A DNA stretch of 64,000 nucleotides, taken from positions 175,956,001 to 176,020,000 of the forward strand of contig OZ038378.1 of the NCBI GenBank assembly GCA_964036045.1. The letters are read 5' to 3'. The translations under genes were made by a program, and so were the position numbers. Below are positions 15,144 to 48,342 of the stretch, in pieces. How positions within the stretch are numbered: the stretch's first letter is position 1; each line of letters starts with the position of its first letter. A model generated the notes under the pieces. The model saw only the letters and a program-made list of their open reading frames with translations, was not told the origin of the DNA and searched no databases. Origin of the DNA: Eutreptiella sp. 'Long Island Sound 2002' (Eukaryota; Protista; Euglenida).

Positions 15144-17789
15144 TGGTGCCTGTGCAACTGTGCTCCAAGCAGCATGTTGTCGCCTGCTGCAGGACTGCGT
15201 GCGAGACGAGAGGGGGCCACCCAGACCCGTGGCGAGATGCATGAGCTGCTCCCGTCGATGCTGCACCCTGTCCTGCATTGTGTCAAGACGATCCTGTGCT
15301 ACATCTCTTTCAAACTCTATTGGCCACCAGGGAGAGTGCATGGCTCGGCCCGCAGGTTGCTGCTGGTTCATGGCACTTTTTTTTTTTTGCACTGTGGCAC
15401 CCAGCCATTTTCACGGCATTTTGGACCAACCTTGGAAACCCTTTGCTTCGTCCCTTTCGACTCCCGAAATCTGATTCCCAGGAGGGCACGAATCAGCGGT
15501 CGAAATAATAGACTGGCGCCTTGCTCGGCAGAAAGAATGACTTCGGATCTTGCAGCATTTTAATTTCAAAATCCTGAACGAACACATTGTTGTGCACCTA
15601 TTTGGACATCAATAAGCAGAGCAATAAATCGCAGCTCCTGCAGGCAATGCCTTGCAAACGGTTTGTGGACGACAAATGTCTGAGTCACAGGAAGGCCATG
15701 AAATGCGTCTTCATGTCGGTTTCCACGTCGTGTAAAATGCATTCGTTATGCCTCTCAGCTGTGCATTTACACCCATTAACTGGGGACTCAGGAAGGAAGT
15801 TTATTGAACAAGTGTTTCCTGACGGAAATGCTCTGAAAGAGTGGGATGGCTGTTATCTACAGCAGTCGTCACCGGTCACGTCTGAGTTTTTGATGATCGT
15901 GGTGGCTGTGGTCAGTTTTTTTATTCACACGACAGGAGGACCCGGGCGCTGGACGCTGGCAGCCATTTGGTGGACACGGACTGCAGAAATCAGGGGTGAT
16001 GGATGATTCTGCATTCCGTGAGTTTCCTCTCCCACTGAAAATGACATTTTTGAACGGGCCGAGGTATGGTTCCTGTGACCATATTTTCCATATTGTTGCT
16101 TTATCACACATGGCCTGCATGTGCTACTTGGGTGTACCCTTGGTGCGGTCAGCACCAATGTCACCACTGGCGCAACCCAGGTTTGTGGGGAGTGGGAATC
16201 CATGTTTAGCCTCCTGAAACCCCCTCCATCCATACATTGTTAATAAGCAGCCAGTGCTGTGGCGTGGCACGGTTATGTTCCCAGTTTAGTCTAAAATGCT
16301 TACGGGTCCATCTCTGCAGAGTTATTGGATATTTGTGTCTTCAGTATCCCAACTAAACCCCCTTTCCTGACAAACCAGCCACAGAAAGTCTTGAGCCATA
16401 TGTTGACATGATTACTGAACAACAAATGCTGCACGTTCACGTGGCGCCCGATCTCCAATTTTAGCTCTTTGTTCACTCACAAGTCCTGTGCAACATGAAA
16501 CCCCAATTTCTACCTGTGACTCTATATGGGACGCCACAACGTGTTGCTTATTAGGCACTGAATGTGCATTGTTTGCAAAAGTGAAATTTTGGTTTTTCAC
16601 CCCAAGTGGTTTTCACTTTCATGCCTTTTTTACTCTTGCTTTGGCCCCCCTCAATTATAATTGTACACCACTTTGGCCAAATTATGCCAAGATTCGATTT
16701 TGCTCACATGCAGAGTGCAGCACTCAATCCTACCTGACAGTGGGGCTCACTGACTAGCATCCACTCATGAAGTAAGCAAATAGTACCTTGATCTCGTTTG
16801 CATGGAGATGTAGTGCACACATTTAGCAAGAATGCAGATGTGTCATACAGTAATGTTCCAGCAGCAGTCGAAGTACAGCAATTCTTTTTTGCAGCACCCT
16901 TTAGTTTTACAGAAGCAATTTTTTGTAGTACGTTTTGGTTGTAGTTTTCAGAATGAACTGAAATTGTGTTTTCCACACAGGCTTGCCTTTTGTTGCAACA
17001 ACACACTTTTTTGAGCAGAGGCATCGTATTTCCCACAATTCTTCTTCTGGGGTGTGCTTTGTTAGTTAGCATGCAATGAACAATTTTCATGACTGCAATA
17101 GCTACTCACTGTCATCACGGGTTGGTAGTTTATTTATTCATGGCTGTATTTTCGTCAATTGTTTTCGTCAAGTAAGGTTGTGCCTGTTTGTTAGCGTGTA
17201 GGTTTGCTGTTCTGCATTTGGGTTTGTACTCTTCACAGTTTTTGCTGGTAAGGGCCACAATGAATGATTTGTTTTGTTTGCGTATAATGTTGTACTACGA
17301 AAGCCAACTGGATGAAAGAAGGCATAAAGCCGAAATTATTTCAGGTTTGTAACCTCTTAATTTTCAGAACAACCGATTTTGTTGGATTATTTGTCTTAAT
17401 ATAACCGATTTTGGTGATTAGTATTTTTCAAAACAACTGATTTTTCTAGTTCTCCAAAGCATCAATGATACAAGCTGGAGAAGAAGGGTTCGTACTACCC
17501 TAAAGGCTTTGTTTTGCAATCCACAGGCGTGCGTTGAAAAAATACTTGCTTTTTCACAGCACAAAAGACACATAGTGTATCACCAACCAAAAGAAATGTT
17601 GACCATTCAAAATCGCTCCGATTAATTATTTTGCATTAGTGTGCAAAATAACTGGTTGTGCCGATTGTTTTGGAAACAATCTCCGATGTTTGCTGATGGC
17701 CGGCTTTTCCGATTAATTGGTAAGACCGGCTACGAACCCGGTCCATATTAGGCAAGGACCCTGAGTGGTTCACCGTTTTCTTGTTTCGC

Positions 17790-19288
17790 TCTCCATAGTC
17801 CACTACTTGCCAACGTGTGCCAGCACAGCCACACCCGTTTAAACCTAGAAAAGTGTGAATTGATGCAGTACCTAGGGTTCGACATTGGCTATGGTTGGTG
17901 GATTCTTGCAACGGCTAAGACCAAACCGCCGATGGATGCTCAAATATGCCACGACAGCGCCAAAAAAGGCTTCCATGACGTCCGGAGTCTGCAATGTCTA
18001 TCGACCTCACGTCATGAACTTCACCTATACGAGCGCCATCTTCACAGATTTGGTCAAGAAAAGTACAATTTGGCGCTACGGTCTCCGAAAGCAAGCCTTT
18101 GACAAACAAGAGCAAGGCGGCGAACGCTAAGTGTATCAGGGCTCCCAGAGCACACGGAGAAATTATATTGGTGATAAATGCGAGTGACGTTGGTAGCGGA
18201 GGTTCCCTATTCCAACAACAAGCACTACAAAGAGGGAAGTAGACACAACAACACCCCATTACGGCATTGAAGGATTAGTCTGAGATGGGACCGTAAAGCA
18301 CACGTACCCCGATAACAAGTAGATGTTGGTACCGTTAGGCAACTAGAGTTGGAAATGGAACGAAGCCCGCTCCAACTACTGTATGTACGAGCATGAACTG
18401 CTTGTTGGGATATTGGTGCTATCTTCTAAGTCCCGATTACTACGGAGCAACCTTGTTGTTTGGCTGTGTAACCAAGAAACGGTCCAAATCTTCCAAAGAG
18501 ATCCCCAACTTGAGAAGGTCAAGCTGTGGCAATGGTGGACGTACTTGAGCCAACTAAGACTCACTGAACAGCACATCGGGGGTGAAAAATGAATAGAGTG
18601 CCCACATCGGTGGCAACAACTTCGATACTCTAACAAGAGGAGAGTCTAAAGAGTTAGCGAGATAGCCGTTTGCCCTTATGGGCGTCCACTTGGATTGGAA
18701 CATGACCATGATCCACCCTTTAGAGAGGCTCCAGTAGAATAAGTACCTGAAAGGGTTTTGGTTTATCTACAAGCAACTAGAAAAGCATCTCGAACCCCTC
18801 CTGCTCAACAAGGAGGAGATAAACATGGAAGACGTGGAAAACATGGAGCTCTTCAACAGAGTAACTCCGATGAGAATGTACGAGTTCTACAAGAATTCGT
18901 TATATGGGAGGCAGGTAAGGTGATGACTGCAGAAGTGAATTGGGACCTACAGGGTTTCGTCTTCCCGATGGAACCAACAGAAGCCATGAGTCTGTACCAA
19001 TGAAAAGAACCAGAAATGCGTATGTTGCTCACCCTTGTAACAATGCAGTCTTTGAAACAAAAGATCCGTGACAAATTGGATATTTAGTCTCCAAAGAGGT
19101 CCAATATGGAGCAAGAGAATATTCACCATGTCATGGCCGCAGCTGCCGGACAACGAAAATGAAGATTACCCCGCAATTGTGGGTTAACGGGTAGTGGGAG
19201 ACGTTATTTACTGCCTTTCGCTGTTGCGATCCCACTATGCAGTAGAAGGACGATAAACGGCATGCTTTCGTTATCATTCTCATATCCC
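17790..19288 (+). pseudogene. Degenerate Ty3/gypsy retrotransposon pol (RT C-terminus, RNase H and downstream region)
   Basis: Frameshifted fragments: KCE.MQYLGFDIGYGWW; KKG.HDVRS..GVCNVYR.H..NFTYTSA..TDLVKKS.IW; IILVINASDVGSGGSLFQ; ELLVGILVLSS..RLL..N.VVWLC; WWTYLSQ.RL...HI.G.KN. Confidence 0.8.
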
Positions 19289-19512
19289 TGTAGCAGGCCA
19301 GAGCACAACACCAATCCTTCAAATCAGGGACGCAGTTCTGATTTTGTCCTAAGACCTTTCATAGTCCCTGAATAACATGATAATAAAGCAATCATGATAT
19401 CTCAATAATTGTAACATACAAACACACACAATCTGGGCATCTTTCATTTATCTACATTACGTAATGCGCAGCACTATGCGACAATCTGAAGTGCGCGCGT
19501 GTGACTGCCGCA
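19289..19512 (-). repeat. 3' LTR (224 bp)
   Basis: 219/224 identical to 21504-21727; TG...CA ends; preceded on the minus strand by the PPT. Confidence 0.92.
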
Positions 19513-21491
19513 CTCCCCTCCCAAGCTCAATGATACCCTTGTACCATTGGGCTGAGCCACAGTTTGTTTGTCATATAAAAGAGTGGCAGTCACACCCAAA
19601 AGCTTTGATACCCAAAACAAAACTGATATTGTCTTTTCATGCAAAATATTTTTTTCCCATGTTGCATGTTTGTATACCACCAGTTCCACTATTTTTTTGT
19701 AATGGGTGTCTTTGGTGACGGGGATCCGATGCTGAAAAATCTCAGAAGTCTATTTTACAAAATTCAGTGGGGCTCCAGGCAAGTGCTTGCACATACAAAT
19801 GCAAATCTCTGTGCATCACAACGCAATGTTTTCAAACAAACAGACATGAAGGCTAATATACAAAGCCCATTCACTGAAGTCATATATGAGTTAGATTGCT
19901 TCTGAGATTCGTTCTCTGGATCCTTCATTTGTCTTTGTTGATGCTGATTGGACTCCTAAGCAGAAGTCACAATGGTTGGCCTCAAATGCAAAAAAGCGTG
20001 GAACCCAAAGAAAATGGTGGCATACCATGGCAACGTCATTTTGACTTTGTTCACTTGTTGAACTCTTGTGATTCTTGGATGAACCTGAAAAATAGGCAAG
20101 GAGGAGGAAGCAAGCTGGTGTAACCTTTATTAGGGCCCTGCCCATTATTGGGTGGCCCACCCTCTTTATTTGGTCACCGATACATTACATAATGCAGTGC
20201 TGGTGTGCCATGCCGAACACAAACACACACCCTGACGCAACCCTTGCGCTGTGTGTGCCGTTCACTACTGTTTCAGTGAGACCCACACACCTGATCTAAT
20301 GGATCAGTCACAACTCCACTTCCAAGATCCTCAATACACTGGTACACACACACACAGCAGAGCGCACGCACTCAAACACTGTGGATGTGCATACACACGT
20401 GTGAGCGCAAGCACTGGAACGCTAGGAGCGCACTCCCGTGCATATATGCCAGAAATTCAAATTTCAGTCAGACTCATCAAAAGCGCCAAAAACAAGGCAA
20501 AGGTGCATGCTCCTGCAACCTTTAGAGCACAAAACATTGCTTGTCTGACCAAAACTGGTCGCTGAGACAAAAGTCACTTTTACATTCAGCTCATTTCAGC
20601 GAGATTCAGGCCCAAAACTAGCCAAACTTGCAAAAAGCGCGAACCAACACACGCCACAACGGAGAACCTTTAGAAAAAAAAAATTTTATATCATCTTCAA
20701 GTCGATGCCTTTTCCTTTCGTCGTCGTCCTCGGATTCGAAGTCCTCGTGTCCGCGGTGGTGTTGTCCCACTGGCACTCGTGGACTCTCGCGTCGGCCTCT
20801 CTTCCGTGGCGCCACTCGTGGACCCCAGCGGCGTCGCTTCGTGCGTGCCGGCTTGCGTTTGCGCAAACTCAAAACCTTTGGGACGACTTGGGCACTCTCT
20901 CGTGGACGCCGCCTTGTTTTTGCCGTCATCTTCGTGCTGACGCTGAACTCTTTCGTCAGCGCTGCACCCAGCGTCGTTCGTCAGCGTCGTTTTTTGAGCG
21001 CAACCCAGCGCTCGTAACACACGAAGTCCTCGAACGCTGCAGCTCTTTTCTTCCCAAGGCCTTGACGTTCTTGGCCCACCCAACACTGGCGGCAAACCCA
21101 AATCCAGCGCTGGATCATGCGTCGCTTAGCGCTACAGCTTGACACATCCTCAGAAAGGCCCCTTCATGATGTTCACGTTCACGAACGGAAGTTGCATACC
21201 AAGACTCTTCTGTCCCCGACTCCTGCAGCACGTTGCGAAGCTTTCGCTGGTGATCACCGTCGAGCATTCTGCCGCGTCTGCTGCTTCTGTAACGTTAACC
21301 CTCAACTTGTCCTCTTCGGCGGGTTGTAGCACTGCCCTGTGCATATATTCGGTGAAAGGGGGAAAATTTTTGTTCCCGAACTTCGGACGTAAATGCAGAT
21401 GTCAGCGTCCTGCTCTGCTGCTTTAAACTTCTCCACAGCGGCCACAATTCTTCGCAACCTCAATCTTAACGATGTCCGAAAATTTTCCCAG

Positions 21492-21503
21492 TTAGGACAA
21501 AAT
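21492..21503 (-). promoter_or_regulatory. Self-priming-type primer-binding site ATTTTGTCCTAA
   Basis: Directly abuts the 5' LTR and is the exact reverse complement of TTAGGACAAAAT inside the LTR (21556-21567). No TGG-initiated tRNA PBS is present. Confidence 0.7.
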
Positions 21504-21727
21504 TGTAGCAGGCCAGAGCACAACACCAATCCTTCAAATCAGGGACGCAGTTCTGATTTTGTCCTAAGACCTTTCATCGTCCCTGAATAACATGATAATA
21601 AAACAATCATGATATCTCGATAATTGTAACATACAAACACACACAATCTGAGCGTCTTTCATTTATCTACATTACGTAATGCGCAGCACTATGCGACAAT
21701 CTGAAGTGCGCGCGTGTGACTGCCGCA
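21504..21727 (-). repeat. 5' LTR (224 bp)
   Basis: 219/224 identical to 19289-19512; followed on the minus strand by a self-complementary PBS-like 12-mer. Confidence 0.92.
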
Positions 21728-36200: not shown

Positions 36201-39200
36201 TGACAAACACAGAAACCTTCCCTGATGCCCGGTGCACGACACTGAGGTTCTTGTCGGTAGATGCCGCGTAGAAGAACTGTGCATCCGCCGCCAGAGCTGT
36301 GACCGCTCCTTTGTGGTGCTTAGCGTTGCCCAGCAGCCGCACCTTCCCGTCCTCCCCCACACGCCACCACACAATGCACCCGGGCACGGTTCCGCTTTGG
36401 AGGGTGCCAACCGCGACGACCCCGGCGTGCGTCCGTGGGTCACGGAGGTCGACTACGCAGCGTATGGGCCCGGGGCTTTCGATGTCCAGAAGGGGCTGAG
36501 TGCTGGACGTCAGTGCATAGGTCTTGAGGCGGCCATCCAAGGCGCCACTTGTGACCACCCCATCCGCAGTGATGCCGACGTAGTAGACAGTGCGCAAGTG
36601 CACCTGCACAAGGAGCCAGGGCTGGATGGCAAGGCTGCCGCGCGGTGCGTGAGTACCTGTGACGGGGCATCGGGAGCCCATTTTAGACACCCCCGCCGTC
36701 GTGCATGCAGTCCTGTCCTGGGATACCACCATTGGTGATGACGTCACTAGCTCCACCGCTCGCATTGTTGCTTGCATCATGCAATTAGGCGGGCTATCTC
36801 CTTCGCAAGAGCGACGTGGCGAGATAAGCAATGTTGATGTATAGGTATAGGAGGCCGAAATTGTAGAAAGGGCAGTGTGGGGCGGCGAGAAAGAAATGTA
36901 AGTCAGTCAGAAATACCCTTTTCAGGGGCACTGGGGGACTGCGATCGTAGTCGCCAACTCGACCAACAGTACATCTTTCGGGGTGAAAGGTGACCACCAC
37001 TAGCTCACTGAATGAAATGGTTGTACGGCGCCGCAGTGCAAGATGGAGTGCAAATGCAGGACGAGTGACCATTGTTGCCGAATCATTACATGGTCTACAA
37101 CTGCTGCTTTCACAAAAGTGTTGCTTGCTAGCACTGTGCCGTTATTTTTTGCACCCTTGCATACCCCGTCACGGCGTGCGTGACCCCTGGTTCTGAAATC
37201 CAGCATCACAGCAGATACGCCCTCTGCAGCAAGACACACCTCCGTCAAATTGTGCAGCAGCTGCCCCGACACGCGATCCCAGACCTTCACGGCATGATCA
37301 GTGCCGCTGCTGATAACGTACGGCCCTGCGGAGGCCACACAGTAGACCTCCAGCTGGTGGCCCTTCAGAACGTGCCGGCACCGCAGCGTATCCCGCTGCC
37401 CCACCGGGGCACAAGCGGACACAGTGTTCAGCTGGGGCACAGAGGACTTGAGTCCCTGAAGAGCCACGGCGGCGTCCTCTCCGAAGCTGCAGCCGTCCAA
37501 CGCCAAAAGCGTCAACGCCGGGTGTGCTTCCAGAGCCTCTGCCAGCGCCACAACCCCCGGGGATCCAACCTTGCTGTTGTTGTCGAGGCGCACCTCCTGC
37601 AGCCCCGCGGTGTCTCGCATGGCCACTGCAAGGCAAGCCTGAGAAGGGATGGGGTGGGAGCAGTGTGACGTGTGACGGGAGCCGACATCGCACAGCCGAC
37701 AAGGCAACTGACGGTTGCTGTGCACCTTTGCTATTTTTGAGATGTTGATGCTGCAGGTGGTGGTGGGGGACCAGGGGGGTTCTGTCGTTCGTGTTGTTTG
37801 TAGTGTCGTGCTATCATTATCGCGGATGGTGGCTGTGGTGATGGCGGAAAGCTTGGTGTTGTTTGTCGTGCTGATATTGGTGGTGTTGACAGTAGGTGTC
37901 AGTGGCATTGGTACTGGTGTCGGTGCTGGTGGTAATGTGCGTGTCCCCGGTGGTAATCTGCTATTGCTGTCGGTGATGTGTGGTGCTTGTGTTTTGGTGG
38001 TGGGTTTTGTGGTGATGGCAGTGGTATTGTTGGTGTTGGTGTGTGGTCATGAATGGCGTTATTGGTGTTCTTGGTGGTGACATTGTCGTTGCGGTTCATA
38101 GCCTTGGTGGCCCAGTCAAGTGACCCACTAGCGGATATGAGCGGAACACAGGATTATAAGGGGCCCCGGCAATCCTTAGGCCACCAGTGCATGAGCTGCG
38201 GCAGGCACTCTGCCCGCATTTCCTGCTTTTGTTCGTTGGTGCGCATTACGTGCGTTGAGGACTGCGAGACTCGGGTCGCCTCCGACTAGAAGGACCGTTC
38301 TGCGCGATGCCGCTCATTCGGCGTCGAAGAGGGCCTGTCATGGACTGCCGTGACTGGCCGCTGGATTCCGCAGACGGCAGTCGGCGGTTGAACACACACG
38401 GCGCGGACGTGCCCGTTTGCTCCGACGCCGCACGGCGGGGCGGGGGCAGTCGCGTCGTGCCCGCTGTGGTATCCCCAGCGTTGTCGTCACCATCAGCTGC
38501 GGTTTTCGAGCATTTTGGTCGTAGTCAGAGCTGCCCTGTCTTTCACTGCCAACCACCTCCACCCACCACCAGCCAAACATCAGCACCACCATTACCACCA
38601 ACACGGGGGGCAGTCGGTGTAGGAAGTACGACTGAGCGCCCCCCGTGGACGATCCCGAGCAGCAGGCACGCGAGGCACGGGGCGGCGCACGCAGAACCAG
38701 ATGCGAATCGGTGAGGCTGCAGTTCTGGAGGCAGAGCCGCACGGCGCCGCTCTGAGGCAGGGCCAGGGCAAGGGCCTGCACGGAGCTGTCCCCCATGGCC
38801 TCGTCCGCCATGACCCAGTGCAGCTGCCGCGCGCCGGCCTGCAGGAGCGCCCCAACAATGGACAGGGAGCCCTGCCGCACGGCCCAGCTCAGAAGGCTCT
38901 GCCCCTCCACGAGCGCGTTCACGTCCAAACCCTGGTCCAGCAGGTCCACGAGATCGCTGAGGCTGTCGCCGCGAATGGCCACAAGCATGGCAGCGTACGT
39001 ACGATGCGACTCGCGGGTGAGGCCCTGCTCCCCCGAGAGCCGATCTATGTACGGAAGGCAGGAACACGACGGACCAGGACACAACATGACGATACAACAC
39101 AACAAAACATGAGGTGACACGAAAAAACACAACACAACACAACAGAACCAGCACAACACAACACCCCTCAACTCAACTCAACTCAACTCAACTCAACTCA

Positions 39201-42200: not shown

Positions 42201-45200
42201 TGGGAGCTACACTGTACGCAAGACCTTTGGTGCGACTGATCAACTTAGAATCCAGCGGCCAGTCACGGCAGTCCATCACAGGCCCTCTCCGACGCCGAAT
42301 GAGCGGCATCGCGCAGAACGGTCCTTCTAGTCGGAGGCGACCCGAGTCTCGCAGTCCTCAACGCACGTAATGCGCACCAACGAACAAAAGCAGGAAATGC
42401 GGGCAGAGTGCCTGCCGCAGCTCATGCACTGGTGGCCTAAGGATTGCCGGGGCCCCTTATAATCCTGTGTTGCGGGTTGGGAACACAAACAATGACACTC
42501 CGCGGATTAATTCTCCTCTGTCTTTGTGTCTACAGAAATTCTTGTGATTCCCAGACGTACAATGACGACCATTTGCCACCAACTGACATCCTTCACCTTC
42601 GAGAAGGCTTTGTATTCTGTGAAGAGTGAAAATCAGGCTGCTGCAGTCCGCTGCCGAAGACAGCCGTGACAGGCAACTAACGCGACCAAAAGGAGACTGG
42701 TACCGACAGTCAGAACCAACGTCCCAAAAATAATGGGGCTGTAATGGGAGGAATGGGAGTAATGGGGAGGGGGGTTGCATGTTTACAATGTGACGCAGCC
42801 TGATGCTGCCGGGCCCGAGTCGGGCTCAGCATTGCAGGGCTGACAGGATACCGGAGGGGGGAGTAGATGCATAAAGAGGGCAAGGCAACCCCCTGGGTTC
42901 CCTGTACACGCCATGGCAGGTACACCTGAAGTCACGGATACTGCGGCCGCTGGTGCAGCGCAGCATGAAGACCGACCCTTCGCTGGCGCCCACGAAGCGT
43001 CTAACGATTTCGGCGCTGGCAGTCGTGGAGCTGAACGCCGTCCACGTCAGGTAGCGGCCCCGGGCGTAGGCCTGGCTGGGTACCCTACAGGGCAGGCCGC
43101 GGTACACCTGTGTCATTGTGTACGACGGGAGGTGTTGGAGCGCGCGGCTGAGGTGGATGATCAGGAAGCGGTAGCGCTCCAGAATGGGCCTGTGCAGAAC
43201 GACATGTGGCAATGATGCGGGCAGGCCAGACACAGCAACCTCGATAGGGTCGTCGAAGCCTGCTGGACTGATAATGGGGGCCGATAATACGGCCTGTCGT
43301 ACGCGCATCGAGGCTGGTGCATGAGCTGCGGGTGTGCTGTGCTGTATTGCAGTGTGTTGTGTCGCAACACAATACAACAACGCAACACAACGCAACTCAA
43401 GGCAACGCAACGCGACACGACAGGACACGATACAACACAACACAGCACAACACAGCACAACACAGCACAACACAGCACAACGAAGGCAGAGCTAAACGGT
43501 TGTCAACACCTCCGTGGACACCCGGACACCCAGATTCGTCTTTTTTTGTAAAAAAAAAATGCCGGTTTTTTTTATTGGAAATGTTTTTTCATCACAATAT
43601 GAGCTGCAATGCACTTGTAAAAGGAATTCTGTGGTTTTTGGATGGTTTCACTCAACAGCTCAACCAATCCCAACAACACAAAACAGAAAAGAGGTACTAT
43701 TTTGTAGATTGGTGGCACAACACAACGCAACGTTACGGAACACAACGCAACGCTACACAAGCAACACAACACGAAACGACAAAACACGACACGACACAGT
43801 GCAACACAATGCTACGCAATGCAACGCAACACAACGCAACACGACACCGCGCACGCAACACAATACGGCACACAACACAATGCATGCCTGTCCTGCAGCC
43901 GCATAGCAGCATTCATGTCGCTATAGATCTCAGTCTCGAGGGTGTACAGGTACACAGCCGCCACACGATCGTCGGTCATGCTCTGGTAGCTTTCGTTTAG
44001 GGCGTGCACCGCTGACGCACGGAAGCTTTCGAGGAAAGTCTCGGCCTTGACCACGAGGTCCAACGCCGTTGGGGCGCGCGATTCAGTCGCCACCACGAGC
44101 TCGTCTTCGCACGCGCCCGCGATGCATAGGTCCGGATGGCGGTCCTACATGTGCAGAAGACGCGAACCAGACACAGTTTTCGCCGGGAATTGGGTGGATT
44201 CGGCTTGCGTAAAAATGGGGGGAAAGGTGGATTTGAAATTATGGGTCAAGCTGGGGTATTGTCCGTGCTATACCCAAATGGTGCCAAAATGGCTGGCCAA
44301 CTGGCCGGAACTAATTTTGGACCGTGCACAGGGTTGCCCTTCATGGACAAAACAAAGTGAGAGATTGCCGCCTTCAGTTACGCCCGGACCTCTAGGATGC
44401 CACGGGCAGCCAGCGTCGATTACCCACAAACTGCCGCCCGTGACCATCAAGCACTATCACCGCCATCGCCGTCGCTTATCTGCCAAACGCCTTCGGTGAT
44501 GCACCAAAATAATTGCGGTTGGTAATGTGTGAACTGCCCTCGGTTGACTGCTGCTTTGCCACTCAGCACCTTCAGCATCCTTAGTCAAGAAAGAAAGGAG
44601 GTCCTCAAAGATGTCCTCCATGTCAATTGAGCACTTGAATATCCCCTAATTCAACACCTGGAGGCTTAGCAGTGGCGTGTAGCAGCTGGCAGGCTGAAAG
44701 CAGAGGCTCAGAGCGACAGTGGTGCTGTTCGGCAGTGGAAAAAGGGTAAGCCGGGGCGGGGGGCTCAAATTTTGATTCGGCAAGACCTCTGTTCGCAGTA
44801 CATTGGTTGGACATTCAGGCACACCAGGTGTCCAGCTGAGCACTCTCTCTCAAACTAGAGTTGAATCTCGACCGAATGGCTGGCCCTTCAATGCAACAAA
44901 TTGCTTATCATGGGCCTTGCCCGCTTTCCGGGGCATTTGTACGCACCCCTCTACCCAATCCTCCCTGGTCCCTGAGAATAGACAGCTATCCGGTGGAATA
45001 CGGAAGAAGGCGTCAGCACAACAGACAGGGAAAAGAGTCGGGAGCATTCGGATCGTTCTGGCAGCGCAGGGGAATGTTCCGGATGTCGCCACATGTATCC
45101 CAGAAGCAGCGGACAAATCCCGGGACGTCCAGCATGTCTCGGCGTTTTTCCCGAAAGCACTGGGATGTACTCGGCGCGTCCCAGGCCAGACCAGAGGTGC

Positions 45201-48013: not shown

Positions 48014-48342
48014 CCCCAAGGTGAGGGGGAGCCGAGAGCACCATGCATGGCGCGAAGGAGAGAGGTGCCCGGACCAAGCTAGGCCCACCACGGGCATGCG
48101 AGCAGACGCTCAGAGACACCAGTCCCGCCGACAGGCCCCGGCTTTCTGGGAACTGGTGGGTTTCACCTTAGATGGAATGGGCCCCAGGTGAGGGGGGGCC
48201 GAGAGCACCATGCATGGCGCGAAGGAGAGAGGCGCCCGGACCAAGCTAGGCCCACCACGGGCATGCGAGCAGACGCTCAGAAACACCAGTCCCGCCGACA
48301 GGGCCCGGCTTTCTGGGAACTGGTGGGTCTCATCTTAGACGG
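48014..48342. repeat. Tandem dimer of a 167-bp unit
   Basis: GTGAGGGGG.GCCGAGAGCACCATGCATGG...CTTAGA starts at 48021 and again at 48188, with few mismatches. Confidence 0.92.

Follow-up and report, generated by a model that had tools for sequence, protein, structure and literature searches.

Ty3/gypsy retrotransposons that prime reverse transcription with their own RNA are known from fission yeasts, namely Tf1 and Tf2 of Schizosaccharomyces pombe and Tj1 of S. japonicus (PMC7175516, PMC4600332). In Tj1, self-priming was predicted from the arrangement that concerns us here, a primer-binding site (PBS) that complements a short stretch of the element's own long terminal repeat (LTR) (PMC4600332). 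Among fungi and vertebrates, self-priming is also known or predicted for Tf1/sushi elements; in plants, it has been predicted for the Tcn1 and TAR lineages and for 12% of the LTR elements surveyed, from both superfamilies (PMC6317226). Between a fifth and a third of the Euglena gracilis genome consists of LTR elements (PMC11252322), and the literature that we searched describes no LTR-element priming site in euglenids. We analysed a 64,000-nt stretch from the euglenid Eutreptiella sp. 'Long Island Sound 2002' (contig OZ038378.1, positions 175,956,001 to 176,020,000; hereafter the window, to whose numbering coordinates refer unless another sequence is named). The window contains a young, non-autonomous LTR retrotransposon of 2,439 bp that carries no genes and is read on the minus strand (19289-21727). 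The first 12 nt after its 5' LTR are perfectly complementary to a segment inside that LTR, and this geometry leads us to propose that minus-strand DNA synthesis is probably primed by 10-12 nt of the element's own RNA.

The element, delimited by sequence reading and repeat search, combines direct LTRs with TG...CA ends, a target-site duplication (TSD), and a PBS and a polypurine tract (PPT) on the same strand, as expected of an LTR retrotransposon. Both LTRs are 224 nt long (5' LTR at 21504-21727, 3' LTR at 19289-19512) and run from TG to CA; five positions differ between them (97.8% identity), and the 5' LTR is 96-100% identical to those of 29 other copies. The TSD spans 5 bp and agrees at four of five positions in the window copy, with GGTAT upstream (21732-21728) and GGGAT beyond the 3' LTR (19288-19284). 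Among the other copies, a perfect GGTTG/GGTTG pair flanks the copy in loci L032/L035, and a four-of-five match the copy in L029/L033. Since TSDs flank the element in three copies, the LTR edges are well defined. The PPT, GGGAGGGGAG, lies directly upstream of the 3' LTR (19513-19522), and the PBS, ATTTTGTCCTAA, begins at the first base after the 5' LTR (21492-21503), where it is placed by the LTR edge and the TSDs. Between them extends a non-coding interior in its long form (19523-21491). Every coordinate given by the first-pass annotation, an earlier reading of this DNA from its letters, proved correct on sequence reading and repeat search, and the PPT, the LTR ends and the LTR identity that it reported were all recovered.

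The PBS (21503-21492) is the perfect reverse complement of the 12-mer TTAGGACAAAAT at 21567-21556 within the 5' LTR, our proposed self-primer, pairing at 12 of 12 nt with an offset of zero from the LTR edge and 52 nt between the two segments. The match is exactly 12 nt long and extends on neither side; the 12-mer occurs again in the 3' LTR (19352-19341). A complement of at least 12 nt beginning 0-2 nt past the LTR occurred in 34 of 1,000,000 random composition-matched 21-mers (3.4e-5), and the analytic chance of the same complement is 3.8e-5. The first-pass annotation had pointed out this complementarity, which the repeat search confirmed, and had also noted the lack of a TGG-type PBS. The latter observation holds as well, as no TGG occurs at offsets 0-5 from the LTR end. 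The nearest TGG begins 14 nt past that end, and we rejected it as a PBS because it is incompatible with the LTR edge fixed by the TSDs.

The position of the complement matters as much as its length. In minus-strand strong-stop DNA, the first copied base lies directly 5' of the primer, and the LTR ends where the PBS starts, give or take one or two bases trimmed by integrase. Since the LTR edge is fixed by the TSDs, the primer must end in ...CAAAAU-3' on A 21503, and a tRNA, with its CCA end, cannot pair there. The sole complementary partner that we found for the PBS is the element's own LTR.

We searched for the family in the 2.28-Gb genome and sampled 29 copies in detail besides the window copy. 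A query consisting of the LTR and PBS recovered copies at 96-100% identity on many chromosomes. A census anchored on bases outside both 12-mers counted 96 LTR-PBS junctions, compared with none for the reversed control, and a 46-nt LTR pattern counted approximately 203 LTRs genome-wide. The resulting ratio of about two LTRs per junction indicates that solo LTRs are rare and that the family is young. The genome thus holds around 100 nearly full-length copies and, given about 100 transpositions of a family with this site, the PBS evidently works.

The same non-coding interior is present in 26 of the 29 other sampled copies, most of which lack about 196 bp of it; the remaining three comprise two copies with nested insertions and one variant, whose interior is likewise non-coding. 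No conserved open reading frame was found in the interior, where the longest frames have no Pfam match and either lack a start codon or are broken by stops in most copies. Searches by tblastn with gypsy gag and pol gave no match inside the element, nor did sensitive blastn and tblastx comparisons of the element with 206 kb of other sampled genome. Given this non-coding interior, the element must be mobilised in trans. Two candidate frames were considered and rejected. An antisense stop-free frame of 296 codons (253-303 codons in L011:1903-2790, minus strand, and at the corresponding position in about 20 other copies) lacks both a start-like methionine and a Pfam match. It is interrupted in the window copy and is probably a by-product of GC-rich sequence; a short basic sense frame contains a stop in the majority of copies.

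Two features of the genomic distribution were also recorded. At C1:95415318-95428276, on the minus strand, a tandem array comprises at least six units of LTR and interior at a spacing of about 2.15 kb, with the PBS after each LTR. In addition, at least 11 of the 30 sampled insertions lie inside gag or pol of other Ty3/gypsy elements, which belong to several lineages (25-99% identity to the nested gypsy element described below; 5' LTR flanks in L002, L005, L014, L015, L017, L020, L025-L028 and L030). These insertions point either to extensive nesting, in a genome rich in retroelements, or to preferential targeting.

In the mechanism that we propose, the transcript would begin at or just before the 10-12-mer (TT)AGGACAAAAT, around 21567-21565, and the 5' end of this RNA would fold back over 52 nt to pair with the PBS abutting the LTR. 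The RNase H of a helper may then cleave after the last paired base, and the freed 3' OH would be extended through the 52 nt of U5/R, yielding a short strong-stop DNA that would transfer to the 3' LTR, as in fission yeast Tf1. Gag, protease, reverse transcriptase (RT)/RNase H and integrase would be supplied in trans by a putative helper of Ty3/gypsy type (or copia type) with a different LTR. If transcription does begin at the 12-mer, the preceding 160 nt (21568-21727) would constitute a putative U3; an AT-rich TTTTATTAT is found about 30 nt upstream of the 12-mer. The centroid fold of an RNA beginning at 21567 retains an 11-bp duplex. The first-pass annotation had described a self-priming family mobilised in trans, and a young, high-copy, non-coding family without CCA pairing is indeed what we find, whereas the priming itself is a reading of geometry.

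Variation among the junctions gives some indication of how long the primer might be. Sixty-one of the 96 junctions show no change at any of the 24 positions of the 12-mer and PBS; the 12-mer is changed at 11 (and unchanged at the other 85) and the PBS at 26. Two junctions are changed in both segments, where the hits fall at non-partner positions, and four changes retain a G.U pair. The rate is close to 1% per site in the LTR 12-mer (11 sites changed), in PBS positions 2-10 (nine changes) and in the 40-nt spacer (about 38 changes), which is the neutral decay of dead copies. Two parts of the PBS exceed this background. Five copies differ at position 1, against about one expected, and 15 copies differ at positions 11-12, with five variants. 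The substitution of AA by TT at positions 11-12 (...CCTTT) is shared by nine copies on eight chromosomes and occurs in both the 2.24-kb and the 2.04-kb forms, with the LTR 12-mer unchanged.

The ...CCTTT copies retain 10 bp of pairing, AGGACAAAAT with ATTTTGTCCT. Since these lineages have transposed repeatedly, a 10-bp duplex would be enough, a length near the 11 of Tf1. The 10-nt core of the 12-mer defined by this subfamily (21565-21556) suggests that the primer's 5' end may lie at A 21565 rather than at T 21567. If plus-strand DNA were to copy a 10-nt RNA primer, the copied stretch would have its ends at these two hot spots, position 1 and positions 11-12. Much Tf1 cDNA retains a PBS tail in single-stranded form, and RT adds bases without a template (PMC11042837). 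With small numbers and related copies, the hot spots are suggestive only as a mark of copying from a 10-nt primer.

The first-pass annotation had recommended a search for the autonomous partner, which yielded none sharing the LTR or the leader. No element of autonomous size with this LTR was found among the 30 copies, the LTR spacings or the PBS-leader census. Pairs of LTRs on the same strand are spaced 1.9-2.7 kb apart, with additional spacings of 13.0, 13.7 and 19.5 kb, among the 100 LTR places listed, and the 13.7-kb pair is explained by a nested insertion. All 94 sites carrying the PBS and leader belong to the family, and the same pair of 10-mers at a spacing of 53-83 nt was found nowhere else in the genome.

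One autonomous element came to light within the family itself. The same 11.4-kb Ty3/gypsy element is nested in two of the 30 copies, in opposite orientations relative to its host copy (first copy, L031:544-10000 with L034 and L006:1-1479, at C3:55827543-55838937; second copy, L032:768-10000 with L035, on C21). Its LTRs of 800-817 nt are 99.6-99.75% identical and its TSD is 5 bp; its pol of 1,642 amino acids comprises protease, approximately 560 residues without a Pfam match, RT, RNase H, integrase and a weak chromodomain match. The PBS of this element, TGGTAGCAAGAGG, is of the TGG type, and its leader has no complement of 8 nt or more in its own 800-nt LTR. We rejected it as the helper, as its LTR ends and PPT differ and its PBS is TGG-type. 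Its PBS-leader motif occurs at approximately 2,800 genomic sites, which indicates that TGG-type sites are common in this genome; the TGG-site pattern, searched genome-wide, returned these roughly 2,800 gypsy leaders and no tRNA T-arm. When the sampled loci were scanned for further LTR ends arranged like those of the window element, the output was too noisy to be used, and the sole candidate, L045, has no clear LTR ends. L045 contains a direct repeat of 270-310 nt, 1,483 nt apart, and belongs with L037, L040, L046, L050 and L055 to an unrelated repeat family (88-93% identical, at least 3 kb long) that contains ATTAGGACAAAATG.

Several observations weigh against self-priming and have to be set beside its fit with position and length. 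The first-pass annotation had proposed compensatory co-variation between PBS and 12-mer as a test, and in the 96-junction census none of the junctions shows a compensatory change, in a family so young that the test had no power. The 12-mer, the PBS core and the spacer all change alike, and conservation across the copies reflects descent and not selection. The total fold energy is no better than that of shuffled sequences (z -0.3 and -0.9) and, with a transcription start further upstream, a hairpin around the 12-mer competes with the fold-back. No helper with the same signal was found, and the sole autonomous element read has a TGG-type site. The screen for a tRNA partner covered five of eight flanking contexts of the 12-mer and 20 places. 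A coincidence of 3e-5 can arise once among the many LTR elements of a genome-wide scan, and all of the support comes from sequence geometry within one homogeneous family.

Among other explanations, the one that fares best assigns the pairing a structural or regulatory role in the RNA, with another primer in use. The paired segments might mask the PBS within a leader stem, act as a signal for packaging or dimerisation, or mediate 5'-3' cyclisation through contact with the 12-mer in the hairpin loop of the 3' LTR. The 12-mer does lie in the loop of a hairpin of 8-9 bp (21539-21586; arms 21586-21578 and 21547-21539; in the window copy, minimum free energy -17.7 kcal/mol, z -1.9). Formation of this hairpin requires that its 5' arm be transcribed, as it is within the 3' LTR. 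Retroviruses, according to Lin and Levin (1998) as cited in PMC7175516, have U5-leader and U5-inverted-repeat (U5-IR) stems around the PBS. These retroviral stems, however, flank the PBS and leave it unoccupied, and a primer would still be required at exactly this position, with no other in sight. The hairpin alone is within chance expectation for a 224-nt LTR. Moreover, the stem AGGGACG/CGTCCCT described in the first-pass annotation, while correctly placing the 12-mer in a loop, includes a G at 21578 unique to the 5' LTR of the window copy, the base being T in its own 3' LTR and in all 29 other sampled copies. Because this G occurs in one 5' LTR only, the stem of the family is the weaker TCAGGGAC/GTCCCTGA of 8 bp and not the 9 bp of the window copy. 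We regard such a role with a different primer as unlikely.

A host RNA fragment, such as an internal tRNA half or another small RNA, might instead bind the PBS, with the LTR 12-mer being a coincidence or a decoy. Half-tRNA priming exists in copia and in the plant Bianca and Osser lineages (PMC6317226), and GGTTAGGAC resembles a D-arm, with GG preceding the 12-mer at six genomic places (GGTTAGGACAAAAT) beyond the 20 that were read. This explanation calls for an RNA with ...AGGACAAAAU at its natural 3' end or at a cleavage site, and it leaves the presence of the same 12 nt inside the LTR to a chance of 3.4e-5. The first-pass annotation had suggested comparing the 12-mer with host tRNAs. Within the five of eight contexts covered, the 12-mer outside the element numbered 25 against 22 and 28 against 46 for the reversed control, and no tRNA was present at the 20 places fetched. 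A tRNA-Leu(UAG)-like anticodon arm containing the 12-mer had no matches, neither the window nor any of the 55 loci yielded a tRNA prediction with ARAGORN, and the AT-rich AAAAT tail fits the stems of cytosolic tRNAs poorly. The case for a host RNA primer is weakened by these results, and we consider it very unlikely. A historical accident, in which an inverted duplication in the founder (for example a fold-back in aberrant reverse transcription) hitch-hiked through a recent burst without any role, would suit a very homogeneous family that has changed at about 1% per site and shows no sign of selection, as well as a large scan that tests many LTR elements, but it is very unlikely for a PBS that works in about 100 copies with intact ends (and a 5-bp TSD in the three checked), that must occupy these very bases and whose complement ends exactly at the LTR edge.

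Beyond the element, the window and genome offered further observations. A degraded Ty3/gypsy pol fragment spanning RT to RNase H (17741-18818, plus strand), about 50% identical to the nested gypsy pol, is separated from the element by 470 bp; the stretch around it at 16-24 kb has a lower GC content and is rich in transposable elements. Elsewhere in the window, a 224-nt inverted repeat (38145-38368 and 42248-42471) has arms that are 99% identical and 4.1 kb apart, and a direct tandem duplication of about 159 nt (48014-48339) is 95.6% identical. The genome is packed with retroelements, with 61,141 RT candidates genome-wide. The 24-nt Euglena spliced leader has 7,483 genomic matches with at most two mismatches, compared with none for the reversed control, in keeping with a euglenid host, and these matches are dispersed along chromosome 1 and not confined to arrays.

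It is conceivable, although we consider it doubtful, that self-priming is common to many unrelated helper-dependent LTR families of this euglenid. Under such a scheme, the helper could have an unrelated LTR and PBS, with its RNase H recognising the geometry of the fold-back and not its sequence. On this view, the frequent changes at position 1 and positions 11-12 of the PBS might be traces left when a 10-nt RNA primer was copied, with errors made where RNA meets DNA and where plus-strand strong-stop DNA ends, and would map the primer from the genome alone.

Placed beside described elements, the window element resembles Tf1 in that its PBS lies immediately beside the LTR and complements a short intra-LTR stretch, of 10-12 nt here and 11 nt in Tf1 (PMC7175516). 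Like Tf1 and Tj1, it has no tRNA-type PBS, and here too an RNase H cut after the duplex would release the primer (PMC7175516, PMC4600332). Tandem arrays with single LTRs between units are a further likeness to Tf1 and Tf2, in which they arise by PBS-mediated, integrase-independent insertion (PMC11042837). Tf1 and Tj1 differ in being autonomous and experimentally proven or tested, whereas the window element is gene-less, is known from its sequence and resides in a euglenid; a U5-IR-type stem, which Tf1 requires, is not demonstrable in it. For the self-primed plant elements, self-priming has been deduced from the same sequence geometry only (PMC6317226), but those elements are autonomous and are placed by RT, RNase H and integrase phylogeny, while the window family encodes no protein to place. 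TRIMs (terminal-repeat retrotransposons in miniature) and LARDs (large retrotransposon derivatives) resemble it in having LTRs, a PBS and a PPT around a non-coding interior, in being mobilised in trans and in having a partner that is often unidentifiable (PMC6934838). However, its 2.4 kb falls between the sizes of TRIMs (<1 kb) and typical LARDs, and classical TRIMs have a tRNA-complementary PBS, which the window element lacks.

The first-pass annotation had not known of this mechanism in such a protist, and the literature that we searched bears this out for euglenids, yet it overrated the novelty, as self-priming has been predicted in fungi, vertebrates and plants (PMC6317226). What is new is the host group and the gene-less carrier; the mechanism is already known from yeast Tf1, vertebrates and plants, and the finding leaves it unchanged. 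If confirmed, our reading would extend tRNA-independent self-priming to the Euglenozoa and would provide a case in which a gene-less element self-primes with RT/RNase H supplied by a helper whose LTR is different, which would bear on what the RNase H cut recognises. While we do not file the window element, which encodes no protein, under the Tf1/sushi clade, the best available comparison suggests that it works like the Tf1-type self-primed elements.

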